DNA of 64,000 bases from Leidyana gryllorum EB-2025a (taxonomy: Eukaryota; Protista; Apicomplexa): contig JBLWGC010000230.1 of NCBI GenBank assembly GCA_048772705.1, positions 1,116,001 to 1,180,000 on the forward strand, read 5' to 3'. The stretch's first letter is position 1. Each line of letters starts with the position of its first letter. Made by a program: the position numbers and the translations under genes. This document shows positions 1 to 11,379 of the stretch, piece by piece. Below the pieces are notes generated by a model that searched no databases, was not told the DNA's origin, and worked only from the letters and a program-made list of their open reading frames with translations.

Positions 1-122
1 GTAGGAACAGGTGGAATAGATGTAGGCTGGGAGATTCGTGGAAGGAGCCTGCGGCTGCGTTGCTGAAGCCAGTCCGCCTCTCGATAAAGCTCTCTGAGCA
101 GACGCTTCCTACTTTCGCCCAT
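1..122 (-). CDS. 5' end of a gene running off the window (MGESRKRLLREL...), weakly like an E2 ubiquitin-conjugating enzyme N-terminus
   Basis: ATG at 122 and an open frame to the window edge; KRLLREL resembles E2 helix 1. Confidence 0.3.
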   Translation of the reverse strand, partial: MGESRKRLLRELYREADWLQQRSRRLLPRISQPTSIPPVP

Positions 123-146
123 GGTGGCAGCTAAAAAGAAAAAGGG

Positions 147-2033
147 CTAGTCTACTTTGACAGCTCCATAAATGGCACGAACAAACCAAAAGCTAGCGAT
201 GAAGCCAACTGCTCCAGTGACCAGGAAGAATGTGTAGGCCATCAGGGCAGTGTAGCCAAAGTACAGCAGGACTGACGCGAAGCGATCGATTTCTAGTGCC
301 ATAAAGAAGTATGCGATCGAGAAGGCGAACAAGAAGACTGCTGAGAACGCCGAGACCAGGTAGGAGCGCCACCACCACTGGTAGTCCTCGGCCGCCAACT
401 GGAAGTAGGTGAAAACAATGGAGGTTTCGGCACAGGTGACGACCAAAATGATCACCACCAACGTCAAGAACCCGAACAGGTAGTAGAAGCGGTGTTGCCA
501 GACGGAAGCCAAGATGAAGGACAGTTCCGAAAAGACCGCGCCGAAGGGCAAGATGCCTCCTGTCACCATGACAAACAGAGGGTGGAGGATAAGAGGAGAT
601 TTCGGGATCTGGCGTGGAATTTGATTCGTCCGGACTGGCAAGGATATGGCCGGCTTGCGATACCCCATGTAGGCTCCGACGAATACGAGGGGTACTGAGA
701 TACCCAACCACAAGAGTACCAGTTGGAAAATGTACTTGAAGGGAATAGCTCCGCTCGACCCCTTGAACCACAATACCAAGTTGAGACACAGGAAGGTTGT
801 AAAGCAGACTCCCGTGTACTGGAAGGCAGTCCATAAAGTCACAATGAAACTCCGGTGGGTCTCGTCGCCTTGGAATAGTTTATTGAAGCGCGCCGATACA
901 TAGCCTGCGGGACCTCCCATGAAGGCGAACAAAATCAAGGCAACCTGTAACATTGCTCCTCTGTTCGCGGGGCTCAACACTCCCAGCATGGCGAAGCCGA
1001 GTGTCAGACCTATCATAATCAGCACTTGTACACCCGTACCAACACACGCGGCCAGAAGCTTGCTGAAGTTGGGTCTCCGGAACACATCGCCGTGAATCAA
1101 CTTCCATCCGCTCTCCTCTTGAGCTTCTTCTATGTCGTCCAAATTATTGTACCGTGCAATGTCTCTCAATAGCGTCCGCAGCAAGATCGTCGCTACCACC
1201 GCCGAAAGCATTAGCACGACTACAAAAGCATTCACGATGGAGAACCATCGAATTTGAGCTGATCCTTCGCTCGCACGGAGGTAAGCATCCCAACGGGTCG
1301 CCCAGCTAATGTCGGAATACTCAAACTTGACCGAGTAGGTGAAGGCAATTTGTGTACCCGCCGGAAGCCGTACTAAATCCAGCCGTGGCAGATTCGCTCC
1401 GCAGTCCATTCCGGTCTCGTTCCTCAGCAACGACAAATCGTGGGCAATCGACCGCGGCTCTACTTCGAACCCGACCACACGTACTCCTTCGTTGGTGGGA
1501 TGATACAAAATCTTCATGTCCAGATGATTCATCAGGTAGGCATGGACCAGAGTTCCTTCGGCCTCCTCTTTGAGCCCCACTGGGTATCCGCTGACAATGA
1601 GTTTGTCTGCGTCGCTCCGTGGGTCTATGTTTCGCCCAAGAGCCATCGGTACAACCAGCGCAGCGGGTAGATCGTCAGCCAGCAAATTAATATAGTACTC
1701 GTCTTCTATCATTCCTTTGAACTCGTTGAGAGACTTCTCAGAGAGTGTTTTGACACACAACACTCGACAGCTATCGTCCACCTTCATTCGGACATCGTAG
1801 GGGGTGTTCTGAATCAGATCTCCCTTGAGTATCTGGCCGAGGTTCTCTTCAACGGTCTCCAATTTCTGGGGCTGACAGTAATCCAGACTGTAGTACCCGT
1901 ATGGCACCTGCGTCTTCACCGAGGTCATCTTGTTCACCTGGATCGGTACGGGTGCCCCCGCGTCATACGCGTTGGGCGCATTCCCAGGGATGTAGAAGGC
2001 TCCAGCCACACCAAATGCCAGCAGAGCCCACAT
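147..2033 (-). CDS. Transmembrane 9 superfamily (nonaspanin/EMP70) protein
   Basis: Signal peptide then FYIPG; ENLGQIL, GWKLIHGDVFR, PVRTNQIPRQIP, EDYQWWW motifs; C-terminal KVD; intronless; ATG at 2033. Confidence 0.95.
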   Translation of the reverse strand: MWALLAFGVAGAFYIPGNAPNAYDAGAPVPIQVNKMTSVKTQVPYGYYSLDYCQPQKLETVEENLGQILKGDLIQNTPYDVRMKVDDSCRVLCVKTLSEKSLNEFKGMIEDEYYINLLADDLPAALVVPMALGRNIDPRSDADKLIVSGYPVGLKEEAEGTLVHAYLMNHLDMKILYHPTNEGVRVVGFEVEPRSIAHDLSLLRNETGMDCGANLPRLDLVRLPAGTQIAFTYSVKFEYSDISWATRWDAYLRASEGSAQIRWFSIVNAFVVVLMLSAVVATILLRTLLRDIARYNNLDDIEEAQEESGWKLIHGDVFRRPNFSKLLAACVGTGVQVLIMIGLTLGFAMLGVLSPANRGAMLQVALILFAFMGGPAGYVSARFNKLFQGDETHRSFIVTLWTAFQYTGVCFTTFLCLNLVLWFKGSSGAIPFKYIFQLVLLWLGISVPLVFVGAYMGYRKPAISLPVRTNQIPRQIPKSPLILHPLFVMVTGGILPFGAVFSELSFILASVWQHRFYYLFGFLTLVVIILVVTCAETSIVFTYFQLAAEDYQWWWRSYLVSAFSAVFLFAFSIAYFFMALEIDRFASVLLYFGYTALMAYTFFLVTGAVGFIASFWFVRAIYGAVKVD

Positions 2034-2051
2034 CTCGACGAAAATTCTGAA

Positions 2052-5000
2052 ATGTCGGGAGACCCACCTGCTTACGTTCCCGACCCCGACTGGGAACCAG
2101 GCTTCATCACCTACGAACCCGAACCATTCGACTTTAGTGGTGATGAAGACGATGCCGAGACGGAGGTACAGAGCATTAAGGTGAGTCCGTCTACGTTTTG
2201 TCCGTGAAGTGAGTCCCTTCCCACCCACGGCTGTGGAAAGACTTCACCGGGCGTCGGGCGGTCTCGTATCATCTCGTGTCCCTCCCCACAGGTGGACGTC
2301 GACCAACTACTCGTCTTTCTAGCCCAAGTTCAACCTATCCTCGATGTGGGCTTCGAACCCGCACTGGACCCTTTGTATAAGCGGAAGAAGGTTCATAGAC
2401 GCCGAGAGAGTGAGAAGAAACGGGGGGACTCGCATCGACGGAAGAGCGAGAGAACTCGGTCCAGCGGTCGAGAAAGTCGAAAACATGCTCGAGACCGCAG
2501 TCGAAGTCGAAGTCGCGATCGGCATCGGGACCGTCACCGAACGCGAGACCGTGAACGAGACCGAGACAGAGGTCGCGATCGGGACCGAGACCGGCACCGT
2601 GAGCGAGACCGTGAGCGAGACCGTGAACGAGATCGGGACTCACACAGACACCGGTCGTCGCGCCGCAGGACCCGTTCCGATAGTCTTTCTGGGGAAAGGA
2701 GAATGGAGCACGGATATGCACTGAGACCCCCCCGTCCCCCTCACCTCATTACCGCGCCTCATCTCCTCCCGCATCAAATGCTGCCTCCACCGGTGGTTCT
2801 GCGGCCACCCATATCGCTGGGTCAGGGTGTGCATCCGGGGCCGCCAAACCCACATATCGAATTGAAAGCCCCCGAGTATCCGCAGGAGATATTGGTAATA
2901 AGCAGCGACTCCTCCGATGAATGTATGTATCGCAGGGGCTGGGTGAAAGAAGTGGGCATCGTGACTTACCGCTGAACTATCCACCTGGCAGCAGCAGTTG
3001 GCGTTCGTTGGTGTCGGATGTGCCTAAGCGGATGTTGACAGTGATGGGAGCGATTGCGCTGTTGTCGGGATTGGAGCCGCAGAAGCCCTGGAAGCATTTG
3101 GATGAGCTCATAGCCAAACAACGTAAAATCTCATACTCTCGGGAATCTGGAGACTTGGTCAGTAAAGCTCATCTTGCCTACCTGGAGTCTATCAAAGGCT
3201 TAATTGACTTGAGCGAGATGCTGGGGGCCGAAGGTTCGTTGAGTATGGACGAGGCAACAAGCCAAGAGGCCAAGGTGACCGGCTTTTACCCTCGGGAGGA
3301 CAGACCAGCGTACGAGCAAGAGTGTAAGTCTACGAATCAGTGCACCTCTGCTTTGCTGAACCATCTGCGATTGATACCGAGGGTAATCGAAGTCGCATGG
3401 CGAAGTGATCCGTCTGATCCGCGGCAGGCGGCCCTCAGACGGGCATATTCTGTGCCCGGAAGTTTGGTGTTAGTTAACACAAAGTTTGCGGGAGAGCGTA
3501 GTACTTCGCGGGGTTTGATAATCTGGTGTGACTGTCGCAGCACTAATCTTACGCTCCACCTTCTGATGATGTTTCCTCATGTTGCTGCGAAGCAAACCGA
3601 CCAGCGGGTTCTGTCTCTCAACAATCTGAATGGGGAAGCTGCCAACGGTGCAGAGCCAAACATGAAGTTGCTTCACGAAGTTGTCACCGTCACTGCGACA
3701 TCGAGCCCCAGCCGCTGCTCGGCGATTCTCGGCGATATACTGGACGGTTTGAACTGGATGAATGTGATGCAGGACATTCGGGCTAAGAATCTCACGGGGT
3801 TGACGGCAACTCAAGCTTCAGCCGTTCTACTCTCGATATTGTTCCCGCTGCCCTTGTTACCCTCGATTCTGGGATGGTGGCCGAATGGACTACCTCACCT
3901 GAAAAACCCAACTAACCCCCCAGCTGACCGCTATGACACTTTCGTGGACGACCTCATCAAGACGAGCGTTGAACGGCACAGAGACCTGCTAAAGGCAGAC
4001 AAGAAAGCCCCCGTCGAGTTGCCCGAGTACATGAAGAAACTTCGTGCCTCTCAATTCGGCCGCGTGGATATCAGGAAGCAGCCTTTGGCCGTGGCGTGGA
4101 AGCTGTGGACAAAGAACTACCGCAAAGCGCTTAAGGACCTCCAAGAAGAAAACTCTGTATTCGTGGGCTCCGCCTTCCGGAAAGAGGACATTTTAGAGTC
4201 CAAACTGGACAATCTGGTTTTCGGGAAAGTGATCGCAGCCCACAACTCCGTCCGGATCATTGAGGATTTGAAAGCGGCGGTGAACTATATCGCACAGGAG
4301 AAAAAAGATGGAGTCAAGACTACAAGAGGCTTCCCAGTAGTTGTCGCTGAGGACCCGGATTTCCGCAGTGGCCCAAGATTTGCTGTGGTAAGTTCTTTGA
4401 ATACTGTTGGGCTGACTTGAGACGGGATCAATTTTTCTCTCTCCACAGAATTTGGCTCTGATCCTAAACGCCTGTGTGGTGGGTGGTGTCAATGTGCAAG
4501 TGCACTTCCGGGATGTTGAACGGCACTTCCAAGCTTTGGAGTATCTGAGAGTTCTATCGTGGGAAGATCCCTTGAAGTCCTCGCCTTCTCCGAGCTACGG
4601 CAAACTCTCTCCCCACCGAATCCTCTCACTGGCCATCGGAGGAGTCGTCGGGAAACATGTCAATAGCGATCCGGTTCCCATCCATCACATTATGCTGCCC
4701 GAGAAATTCGGGCCTAATCTCCAACCCGAAGTCTGCAGACCCATAATTGAATGGTGGCAGGCCGCCGTGGCCACCGGATCCATATGGCACCTCGGGATTC
4801 GCCTGCACGCCACTCGGGCCGCTGCGAACATGTGTCTGAATCTCTTGAAGAAATCTGAAATGAGATTTAGTTTGCCTGTTGTGGGCAGCTTAGCGAGTGG
4901 GAAGGCCACCGCCGGGACCGTCGAGAAATTGACGAATGCCGAGAAACTAATGTCCATCTGGTGGCTTTGCTATATAATCCGAATGCTGGGTCCTACAGTC

Positions 5001-7517: not shown

Positions 7518-10500
7518 TCACCGCGAAGGGGACGTGGCAAACACTCGAGTGGAATCAGGAAAGAAATCCTTCAGAGGCGTGAATTGAGCAGTCATCTCAC
7601 ATCGAACTGGCAGTGTCTGGGCAAAATACCCCTTCTCCCACCAGGTGCGCATCTCGCGACCAGTGAAAGGACCCTAATTGCGCGTGAAATAAAGATCCTG
7701 CGATAATTAAAGTGTCAAACTCACCTGTATGTTCCCTTTCGGATCCACATATTGCCAGATCTTCTCATCCCCTCGAAGTTTGCGGTCTTTATTTGGCGGA
7801 GCCGGGGGTCCATTGTTGTTAGTACGCGCTGGAGGGCGGGCCTGCTGCTGCTGGGGCTGGGGCGGGGCCTCCACTCGACGCTTGTTGTAAGCGGCCTTCA
7901 TCCCAGAACTGTCCAGAGAGCCGTATCCTTCCTGCTGAGACTTGGCGGCCAACGCGTTCACTGGACGCATTGCGGAGGCCGAGAGCATTTCCAGCAGTTG
8001 TTGTGGTGACGCCCAATCTTGAGATGAGTTGTCCAAATTTCCTTGGGAACCATGTTGTCCCATACGATAGTGATCGTTGCCTTGACGATACTGTTCGCTC
8101 GTGCCTTGACGGAACTGCTCTTGCAGCTGACGATATTGGTCTCCTGCCTGACGATACTGGTCCCCGCCATAAGTATTACGATCTGCATATTGCGGAGCAC
8201 CGCCGTACCCACGATCGCCCCGATATTGATTCTCGCCGCCAAAACTCCCATAACCTGCGCGGTCGTCCCCACCTTGACTACCGCCGAACTGTCGGTCGTG
8301 CCCATAACGAGGGTCGTGGGAGGGTGGTGGTGCCGCCGGCTGGTTCCCGGAACCATATGACCGGTCGTTGGCCCCAGCAAACTGACCGCCATAAGGCCTC
8401 TCAACTCCATAAGAGGGCCTCTCATTGCCTGATTGGGCAGCATATTGGCGAGAATCACTCGTTTGACTTCTGCTGTCGTTTCCTGGATACTGATTAGGCT
8501 CGCCCATCGAACCGAACGAGCGAGGACCTGGTTGACTGAGAGGGGGGCTGGGGTTGTTATCCATCATTAAGGGGAGACCCGCTTGTTGGATAAGTCTTAA
8601 CAAGTGTTGTTGTTCTTCAAGCGGTGCAACTGCGTTAGGTGGTGGTGGTGGTGGAGGGGGAGGAGGCTGTGGTTGGTTTCGTCGACCCGCGGGGAAACGA
8701 TTCGAATTCCTCCTTTCGAGCCCGTCAAAGGCTTCCGATACGGCAGGAGGCGCCGGAGCAGCAGTGGCTGAGCCGAGACGGTCATGTTCAACCTTGACTG
8801 TCACATGGGGCAACATATTCTTGAGAAGCTGGGCCACAGAAGAGGTGTCTGCAGCAGCCGGAGCAGGAACGGGCGCCGGCTCAGCAGGAACCGGAGGAGC
8901 TCTTGCCTGCGGTGGACCATATTGATGTTGGGGGAGCATCTGATGACCCCGCATCACCCGCTCTTCTATGTCAAACATCCAGGGCATATCAGTCTTTGAA
9001 CGTGCATCTGGCACTGGATACCCCTGGGGCATGGTCACTTCAGATACCGGCGGATGATGTGGCATCGTAATCACCTCAGGCTCCTGCGGCTGAGCGGGCG
9101 GTGGAGGTGGCGGCGGTGGTGGGGGTGGGGGTGGAGGTGGAGGAGGTGCAACACGATTAGCTGGCTGTTGCGTATAGTATGGGGGAGGGATATTACTCCT
9201 CGTCGAGGGCGCTTCTTCGGTTTGAGGGGGCAGCTGGGCTGGAGTCGGATCGACTGCCGGGACGACACCGGACACAGTTTTGTCTTCGGCAGGTTGTTTC
9301 CCGCCTTGTTTCCGACTTTTTGGCTCGCTTGACGGCGGTTGCGAAACAGGCGGACTGTGAGTATCGTGAGACTCAGAGACAGACTCCGAGGGACCGGACC
9401 GCCAATCGAGGGCAAAGTCGACATCCTTTGCACCACTTCCTTGACTGTTGGCCGCATATCTACTCTTGTCGAATGGTCGCTGGCCAGGTTTGCCCTTCAT
9501 GCGCTTCTGTAAATCCTCTGGAAGCTCTTTATCAGTGATCTCTCCAGCCAGATACCGCGAGATTAGTTCGGTATTACGATTTCTGTTCTTCAGCCGATAC
9601 GTGTTGACCTTGGAGGTGGCTAAGTTTGCACGTGGTACGGGTGGAGGTCTGTGCGCATTTGTCAACGATAAATTTCTCTCTGGGGTAACTTACGGGAAGT
9701 TGGTGACTTTGTCGACTTGCCATGCCACTTCGTAAAGTTCATCGAAGGGCATGTCGAGGATTTTGATGCCCTCTCGAGTCCAGATTTTGACAACATTGTC
9801 CACGTTCATTCGAGGCCGCGTGGACGCTGTGAAGAAGTATCGGCCACACGGTGACCAGTTGCAGACGACAGTGCACGCTTCCCGCCAATCAGCAATCAGT
9901 GTAATGGCTCCGTTTGGTGCTCGGTAGTGGAATGTTAGATCGCCCGCGAGGTTACCGAAACCTCCGATGGCTATCATATCACCAAATGGACCCCAACTGA
10001 CGGTGTTTTTATAGCCACGAGGGAAACTGTGGAGTCGCTGGGCAGTGTTACCGTCGATGAGAAAGATGTCTGTTGAAGTTTATAGAGAGAGAGTCAACAG
10101 CACCGCAAAGTGACCTTACCCGAAGGAGCTTTCCCTTCGATCAACACCAACTCATCAGTAGTTGGAGACCATTTTGCGTCTTGAGTCACTCGTGTATTGA
10201 TCTTTGTGAGGAGAAGCGTAGCGACAGACCCGGTGTGCAGACCCATAGTGTCTTTGAGCGTGTCGGCGCTCTCATCGCTGGTGGTTACTTCATCGCGATT
10301 AGCTTCCAGATCGCAGAGCCAAGCATCGCCAATGCTACCGTAGTTCTCGCCGGCTGAGTCCACCAACGTCGAGGTGAGAAGGAGACACTTTCGACGGGAA
10401 GGGGCCCACAAAAAATCGCAGCCATCCACGTCGGGAAGCTCGCTGACACCAATCTTGCACCATCCGGGGCCTCCTTCGCTTCCTCCCAAGAACAGCACTC

Positions 10501-11379
10501 GAACCTCGCCCGGCTTCCGAGGTGTGGACTGTGTTGCCGGAGCGAACATTGTGACCACTATTGCTTCAGGATTCGTTGGACACGCTGGAGCGATTCCAGC
10601 GGTGAATCGTGGTGGCAAGGGAAGAGCGAACAAAGGCTTTCCGGAGAAATCGTGTCCCCTACTGACCTCGAGCTTGTCGCCATTGGAGCATAACCGATAC
10701 TTTTCATCGTCTCTCCATTGTACGGGGCCCGGTTGAGACGCTCGTGTGAGTCTTAGCGACAGCAACACCTCAGCGCCAGTCACCTTGGTGTCCTTTCTGT
10801 TGACGCGGTAAATATGATAGTTGGGGCCTGGAGGTCATTTGTGTTGAACACAAGCGGTTGACGAAAGGTGGTGTTACCTGTAATCTCAGTGAGTTGGTGG
10901 CCCGATGGAGCCCAATAGGCATAGAAATAACTACCCTGCGGCGAGAAACCGAACCACTTCAACTGTTTTGCCGGAACATTCGCGAGCCCTTCGGGAACGG
11001 GGAGCGAGCACCCCTGATCGTTACCCAGTGCGTTAGCCTGACACTGTGTTGCGGGGTCGAACTCGGCGTCCCAGCTCACCCCATACAAAACCAAGCCGCG
11101 GTCTGCGAGGTTTATGGCCAATACGGAGCCATTAGGAGCCCAAGCTGTGGCGAGAATCTCTCCCTTTACTTCAGCGATGGTCTCAGGGGCTTGCGAGCTC
11201 TCATACACCGGAGCATCGAGCGGCAAGTCCCACACTTTGTAGACATTCCGGCCACGCAGAGACAAGAAGCTGTGCTTCTGCTCCTGATTCATCTGGTCAC
11301 ACCCATTCATGCGCCGGCTTTTGCAAAGGAAGTGAGAGAAATTAGGAGGAAAAAATGCTACCTGCGGAGCAACTATCAT
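7518..11379 (-). CDS. EIF2A: eIF2A (WD40 beta-propeller) fused to a Pro/Gln/Gly-Tyr-rich tail and a C-terminal GYF domain
   Basis: eIF2A motifs ENYG, GFGNLAGD, WSPCGRYF, PRMNVDN; frame-preserving introns 10070-10119, 9649-9693, 7674-7724 and ~10752-10783; GYF motif WQYVDPKGNIQ|GPF..MRTWWEKGYF; exact start uncertain. Confidence 0.8.

Follow-up and report, generated by a model that had tools for sequence, protein, structure and literature searches.

A five-exon eIF2A-GYF gene of Leidyana gryllorum, a new member of a myzozoan family

A DNA stretch of 64,000 nucleotides (nt) from Leidyana gryllorum EB-2025a (contig JBLWGC010000230.1, positions 1,116,001 to 1,180,000; hereafter the window, with positions counted from its first letter) carries on the minus strand a spliced gene which, almost certainly, encodes a single protein of about 1200 amino acids (aa) consisting of an eIF2A-type propeller, a long linker and a C-terminal GYF domain. 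The eIF2A-GYF proteins form an old, widespread and annotated family of apicomplexans, chrompodellids and dinoflagellates, and the window gene adds a new member to it rather than inventing the architecture. Overall, the data are best explained by a myzozoan eIF2A paralogue that bears a GYF domain and acts as an adaptor on the 40S ribosomal subunit, a reading to which a probability of roughly 0.6 is given. The fusion itself is no discovery, being present in the databases already and mentioned in print; what is new here is the corrected five-exon model and a genome that keeps both the canonical and the GYF-type eIF2A.

Gene structure and the evidence for a single gene

Searches were run exon by exon or on the orthologous proteins. 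The search of exon 3 against 1.84 billion representative proteins revealed as the top match a 1228-aa protein of Blabericola migrator (P0001, a EukProt record under an assembler-style contig name; 63-65% identity), further top matches being P0002 (1420 aa), P0003 (1340 aa, Gregarina sp. Poly1) and P0004 (2019 aa, Besnoitia besnoiti). All four of these proteins carry the eIF2A domain at the N-terminus and the GYF domain at the C-terminus. P0001 stands in for the spliced window protein in the fold prediction and in the tree described below. The four splice junctions of the window gene are all gapless relative to P0001, with a single residue left at each for the split codon.

The sequence-only reading had proposed a single-gene fusion of an eIF2A propeller, a low-complexity tail and a GYF domain, and the colinearity with P0001 as well as the single-ORF (open reading frame) relatives bear this out. 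The 45-nt intron (9693..9649, GTAAGT...CAG) which it had placed in frame, joining CC|A = Pro, has a P0001-colinear junction, and the 51-nt intron (7724..7674, GTGAGT...TAG) does complete the GYF domain, since the signature W-x-Y-x8-GPF-x4-M-x2-W-x3-GYF is read across it, that is, over the junction of exons 4 and 5. The downstream ORF was rightly said to have no ATG near its 5' end, the first in-frame Met of exon 4 being residue 50. Introns 1 and 2 (10877..10828 and 10119..10070) are additions to the earlier list. The gene model, which was derived from reading of the sequence, six-frame ORFs and a frame check, comprises the following features:

11379/11310..7518, minus strand: the gene, five exons and four GT-AG introns
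10878..11379, minus strand: exon 1, N-terminal propeller blades; open frame, residues 36-167 align to P0001 16-136 and P0002 14-138
10828..10877, minus strand: intron 1, 50 nt, GTAAC...CAG, phase 1; excision joins two frames, P0001 colinearity exact (exon 1 residue 167 to 136, exon 2 residue 1 to 138)
10120..10827, minus strand: exon 2, middle propeller blades; full-length identity to P0001-P0003 of 44-47%, the Pfam eIF2A match beginning at the exon end
10070..10119, minus strand: intron 2, 50 nt, GTAAGG...CAG, phase 1; colinear (exon 2 residue 235 to 393, exon 3 residue 2 to 396)
9694..10069, minus strand: exon 3, last propeller blades with the PF08662 core; Pfam eIF2A E-value 2.5e-29, best solved structures 3WJ9 and 8DYS (both eIF2A)
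9649..9693, minus strand: intron 3, 45 nt, GTAAGT...TTGAC...CAG, phase 2, joins CC|A = Pro; P0001 colinearity exact (exon 3 residue 124 to 518, exon 4 residue 2 to 521)
7725..9648, minus strand: exon 4, post-propeller helices, disordered linker and first GYF strand; 641 stop-free codons, 16% Pro
9351..9644, minus strand: conserved post-propeller island, YR-type, R-Y-x-x-G-E-I...L-P-E-D and DWRS motifs; BLASTP E-value 1e-10 to P0001 521-616
7674..7724, minus strand: intron 4, 51 nt, GTGAGT...TAG, phase 0, within the GYF domain; colinear (exon 4 residue 641 to 1180, exon 5 residue 1 to 1181)
7673..7521, then TGA 7520-7518, minus strand: exon 5, remainder of the GYF domain and a short tail; Pfam GYF 36.1 bits, translation
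7536..7757, minus strand: GYF domain of the Smy2/GIGYF type by Pfam and signature (W-Q-Y-V-D start), split by intron 4

All four introns fall into one narrow length class (50, 50, 45 and 51 nt), and each has a branch-like TTGAC, TTCAC or TTCAAC close to its 3' end. The donor of intron 3 (CC|GTAAGT) puts a TAA (9692-9690) in frame, so that retention of this intron leads to an immediate stop; a propeller-only product of about 528 aa would then be made. At the other end of the gene, an upstream minus-strand ORF stops at TAA 11382-11384, only 2 nt before the ATG at 11379. Judged by the N-termini of the orthologues, which it matches better, the ATG at 11310 (Met24) is the likely true start.

The same region could also be read as two adjacent genes, namely a propeller-only eIF2A-like gene ending at TAA 9692-9690 and a GYF gene starting from the exon 4 ATG (residue 50, near 9500). 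In favour of this arrangement are the stop codon situated exactly at the intron 3 donor, the in-frame ATG about 150 nt downstream, the very compact genome and the comparative nature of the evidence for the fusion. However, the 48 residues between the acceptor and the ATG are conserved (E-value 1e-10) and the P0001 alignment runs through them without a gap, while intron 3 has a consensus donor, the branch-like TTGAC and the length class of the other three introns. Moreover, both domains are found in single ORFs of many relatives, several of which have EukProt or MMETSP transcript-type names or lie on 2-3.6 kb contigs and are taken to be transcript assemblies with single uninterrupted ORFs. Exon 4 residues 2-99 are conserved not only in P0001 (BLASTP E-value 1e-10) but family-wide, the invariant Tyr included. 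Because the conservation reaches back beyond the first Met of exon 4, a separate GYF gene beginning inside this exon is very unlikely, and the two-gene arrangement seems scarcely tenable next to the single spliced gene.

The eIF2A-GYF family and the paralogues in the same genome

A profile search of the genome (15.5 Mb, 237 contigs), whose best matches point to a gregarine, detected three PF08662 loci, namely the window gene and two others:

C213:40249-43716, ORFs 2619-2972, 2138-2638, 1462-1992 and 692-1432, minus strand: canonical eIF2A, short introns, Lys-rich stretch and coiled-coil tail
C126:98602-102141, ORFs 751-2046 and 2072-2533, plus strand: eIF3b, 173 bits to solved eIF3b chains

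The C213 protein scores 105 bits against human eIF2A and has only canonical eIF2As of ~600 aa among its matches. Since the genome thus also keeps a canonical eIF2A with the coiled coil, the window gene is a specialised eIF2A paralogue. The closest relatives of the latter lie elsewhere, exon 3 being 63% identical to P0001 versus a 31-residue local match to the canonical eIF2A of the same genome. In its propeller, post-propeller helices and C-terminal GYF domain the window protein is colinear with the members of the eIF2A-GYF family, which it resembles more closely than it does canonical eIF2A.

To map the spread of the family, a hidden Markov model (HMM) built from four GYF domains was run over the 150 best eIF2A relatives, 28 of which turned out to have a C-terminal GYF domain; Pfam confirmed those that were checked. 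Named members among these are the gregarines Blabericola, Gregarina and Digyalum, the coccidian Besnoitia, Chromera velia, Colpodella angusta, Amoebophrya and Polykrikos. A word search added a 2051-aa "eIF2A, putative" of Plasmodium relictum with both Pfam domains, a 1961-aa protein of Neospora caninum for which both domains are recorded, and a Toxoplasma gondii entry ("GYF domain-containing protein", an incomplete sequence of 1560 aa), which is 76% identical to the Besnoitia protein and for which only the eIF2A domain is recorded.

In a tree of 74 full propellers (quick method, with support from the Shimodaira-Hasegawa-like approximate likelihood ratio test, SH-aLRT, only), 20 of the 22 GYF-bearing rows came out in a single clade with an SH-aLRT of 95, separate from canonical eIF2A. 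The GYF-less proteins within this clade are piroplasm sequences and probable truncations. In the piroplasm members P0010 (Babesia ovis), P0011 (Theileria annulata) and P0014 the GYF domain was undetectable, though one of them is named "GYF domain-containing protein", and its absence there looks like a secondary loss. The two GYF-bearing rows outside the main clade sit in a group of short proteins (523-701 aa) from metagenome contigs. This second, short eIF2A-GYF group (P0104, P0194-P0197, P0088) comes from intron-poor eukaryotic metagenome contigs and stands outside the main myzozoan clade.

The domain architecture had at first been regarded as unusual. This view has to be abandoned, as the architecture is conserved across Myzozoa, annotated in databases and, in the case of the T. 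gondii orthologue, already mentioned in print (PMC10746186), i.e. both common and described. No paper on the eIF2A-GYF protein itself was found in the literature.

Propeller, linker and GYF domain

The eIF2A domain of exon 3 is recognised by Pfam PF08662 with 103 bits (cut-off 20.5; E-value 2.5e-29), the match extending onto the end of exon 2. The AlphaFold model of P0001, used as a proxy, reached a predicted template modelling (TM) score of 0.76, and the TM-score to both 3WJ9 (Schizosaccharomyces pombe) and 8DYS (human) was 0.83, ranking these above eIF3b. The N-terminal domain is accordingly modelled as a nine-bladed propeller of the eIF2A type.

Behind the propeller the two kinds of eIF2A part. 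Profile-profile comparison of the tails gave no match to the C-terminal coiled coil (KKLRxIExLK...GxxLxxxQxxK), and only the first ~50 columns align. These run W-R-P ... Y-R-P-P and represent a segment common to canonical eIF2A and the window protein. BLASTP of the exon 4 start against the canonical eIF2A tail of the same genome returned no match, and hhalign gave a weak one over the YRPP segment only (E-value 7e-4, probability 27%). The usual coiled coil, which had been reported missing, is thus undetectable by profile comparison; the YRPP-type segment after the propeller, however, is kept. After the shared W-x-P ... Y-R-P segment come a motif peculiar to the family (R-Y-x-x-G-E-I ... L-P-E-[ED]) and then D-W-R-S, a region which in the P0001 model forms two helices with a predicted local distance difference test (pLDDT) score of about 80-88. 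Most of the post-propeller island precedes the first in-frame Met of exon 4, and the island HMM also matches Besnoitia. Where canonical eIF2A has its coiled coil, the window protein has two helices specific to the family, then the long disordered linker and the GYF domain.

It could be argued that the protein is a plain working initiation factor of the eIF2A type, engaged in delivery of initiator methionyl-tRNA (Met-tRNAi) or in alternative initiation, with the GYF domain only modulating its localisation. The propeller is clearly of the eIF2A type and databases name the orthologues eIF2A. On the other hand, a separate canonical eIF2A is kept in the genome, the canonical eIF2A C-terminal region is not detectably conserved and a deep clade has retained the GYF domain, which makes such a role unlikely and leaves the specialised 40S adaptor as the preferred reading.

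With regard to the GYF domain, exon 5 alone matches PF02213 with 36.1 bits (cut-off 25.7). The best solved structures for the domain of the orthologue are GIGYF2 (7RUP), GIGYF1 (7RUQ) and Smy2 (3FMA), and CD2BP2 was not matched. The Smy2 subtype is reportedly recognised by Asp instead of Trp after W-x-Y-x and by a short first loop. The W-Q-Y-V-D of the window and the structure matches of the orthologue assign the window domain, as far as its sequence tells, to the Smy2/GIGYF subtype. Ligands of Smy2/GIGYF-type GYF domains are PPG-hydrophobic motifs. No PPG motif is present in the window protein or in its three closest orthologues, and no Y-x4-L-hydrophobic match to the 4EHP-binding motif Y-x-Y-x-x-x-x-L-hydrophobic occurs in any exon. 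Since this subtype takes PPG-hydrophobic ligands and the protein has no PPG, the idea that the protein regulates itself by binding of the GYF domain to its own polyproline is unsupported; the long Pro runs are, besides, absent from the orthologues.

Two further loci touch on this domain. Besides the window protein, a single GYF protein was found in the genome (C140:259241-262372, ORF 70-2814, plus strand); it is 914 aa long and Gln/Pro-rich with a central GYF domain, and may be a GIGYF/Smy2-like factor. A candidate partner for one or the other of these two GYF proteins is encoded on contig C230 (C230:374000-382000, ORF 2650-4026, plus strand); this 458-aa protein ends in PPPGF, a PPG-hydrophobic sequence resembling a GYF ligand site, and has a membrane-span-like hydrophobic stretch.

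Exon 4 encodes a Pro/Gln/Gly/Tyr-rich linker with the following features:

9096..9146, minus strand: poly-proline run of 17, absent from P0001-P0003
8790..8849, minus strand: linker island LL-x-x-[MI]-LP-H, kept among gregarines
8637..8666, minus strand: poly-proline run of 10 (residue count)
8568..8615, minus strand: linker island L-I-[QE]-Q-A-G-L, kept among gregarines
8043..8510, minus strand: G/Q/R/Y/S-rich segment with YG and [YF]RQ repeats; orthologues mostly have gaps or unrelated sequence there

The polyproline runs and YG/YRQ repeats described in the sequence-only reading are indeed present: there are Pro runs of 17 and 10, and the G/Q/R/Y/S-rich segment is a stretch of 156 aa (56% Q/N/G/S/Y) with YG and RG dipeptides and four [YF]RQ repeats. 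The YG/RGG/YRQ region did not, however, prove to be a family feature but a species-specific insertion. Both Pro runs and the YG-rich stretch are missing from the three closest orthologues. Linkers of all orthologues are long and biased in composition but vary with lineage, being Asn/Lys-rich in Plasmodium and Ala/Gly-rich in Besnoitia, and their conservation amounts to short islands among gregarines only. By comparison with the orthologues, the polyproline and YG/YRQ stretches appear as species-specific low complexity and the linker as fast-evolving.

This bears on the proposal that the tail drives the protein into RNA granules as a scaffold of the prion-like or phase-separating kind, with the low-complexity region as the functional core of the protein. 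The composition of the 156-aa stretch with its YG and RG dipeptides and the long, biased linkers of all orthologues would suit such a scaffold, but neither the YG-rich stretch nor the long Pro runs occur in the closest orthologues, linker composition differs widely by lineage, and conservation is limited to the short islands and the two end domains. A scaffold function therefore seems decidedly unlikely. Under the adaptor reading, the polyproline and YG/RGG-like stretches may add multivalency without being the core of the mechanism.

Possible function and comparison with known systems

In the mechanism proposed here, the propeller would dock on the 40S subunit in the manner of human eIF2A, with the flexible linker leaving the GYF domain free to catch PPG-hydrophobic motifs on other proteins. 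Such a protein would be no plain initiator-tRNA carrier but a ribosome-tethered adaptor, recruiting messenger ribonucleoprotein (mRNP), repression or surveillance factors to the small subunit. By analogy with related systems this mechanism is put forward tentatively, at somewhat less than even odds; a link to repression or RNA-granule machinery may reasonably be supposed. Human eIF2A binds the 40S subunit directly, and its binding of Met-tRNAi is known too (PMC10570035). Labelling in yeast placed eIF2A as well as the GYF proteins Smy2/Syh1 close to the 40S head (PMC8583833), a connection of human eIF2A with turnover of the 40S subunit during quality control has been described (bioRxiv 10.1101/2025.05.22.655611), and a set of proximity data lists the T. 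gondii orthologue along with DDX6, NOT1, PABP and Puf1 (PMC10746186). The last three observations are consistent with an adaptor and do not amount to proof of it.

Several points weigh against this reading. Translation inhibition by human eIF2A needs part of the C-terminal helices besides the propeller (PMC10570035), and 40S binding of the window protein is an extrapolation because the coiled coil is undetectable in it. The T. gondii proximity data are non-specific, and the PPG-motif partner of the GYF domain is putative. The piroplasm relatives have apparently lost the GYF domain, and therefore the propeller part functions without it. Finally, one must bear in mind that the support for the fusion is comparative.

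The role of eIF2A itself is disputed: it has been seen as a carrier of initiator tRNA, as a factor sequestering the 40S subunit or as one acting in the turnover of this subunit (PMC10570035; bioRxiv 10.1101/2025.05.22.655611). The natural fusion of such a propeller to a GYF domain of the GIGYF type is conserved in a whole supergroup branch to which Plasmodium and Toxoplasma belong. It hints at joint action of eIF2A-like propellers and mRNP partners bearing PPG motifs, and the eIF2A-GYF family merits experimental attention in either of these genera. A bolder and rather improbable version would be that eIF2A-GYF is a ribosome-tethered functional analogue of the GIGYF proteins which arose once at the base of Myzozoa. 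If true, the "Rosetta-stone" fusion would predict that eIF2A and Smy2/GIGYF-type GYF proteins share one 40S-surveillance/repression pathway in eukaryotes generally, and gregarines with both paralogues would show how two eIF2A roles were divided.

Among the known systems, eIF3b resembles the window protein in its nine-bladed propeller, which falls under the same Pfam model, but the window propeller scores eIF3b below eIF2A and the eIF3b of this genome is the separate locus on C126. GIGYF1/2 and Smy2/Syh1 have a GYF domain of the same subtype and, for the domain of the orthologue, are the best matched solved structures; unlike them, the window protein has no 4EHP-type motif, carries the GYF domain at its extreme C-terminus and starts with an eIF2A propeller. 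With canonical eIF2A (human 8DYS, S. pombe 3WJ9 and the C213 copy) it has in common the nine-bladed propeller and the Tyr-Arg-Pro-type segment directly after it, yet it lacks the K-K-L-R-x-I-E-x-L-K ... G-x-x-L-x-x-x-Q coiled coil, possesses a GYF domain and belongs to a separate clade. The nearest likeness is to the myzozoan proteins (T. gondii TGGT1_204160, B. besnoiti XP_029218490.1, the putative eIF2A of P. relictum, C. velia Cvel_12504), in which the parts follow in the same order, i.e. propeller, YRP-type motif and helices, disordered linker and GYF domain, the exons being colinear with those of the window gene in the gregarine members. From these the window protein differs in length and composition of the linker, with the Pro runs of 17 and 10 and the YG/YRQ insertion found in this species only, but it does not differ in kind.

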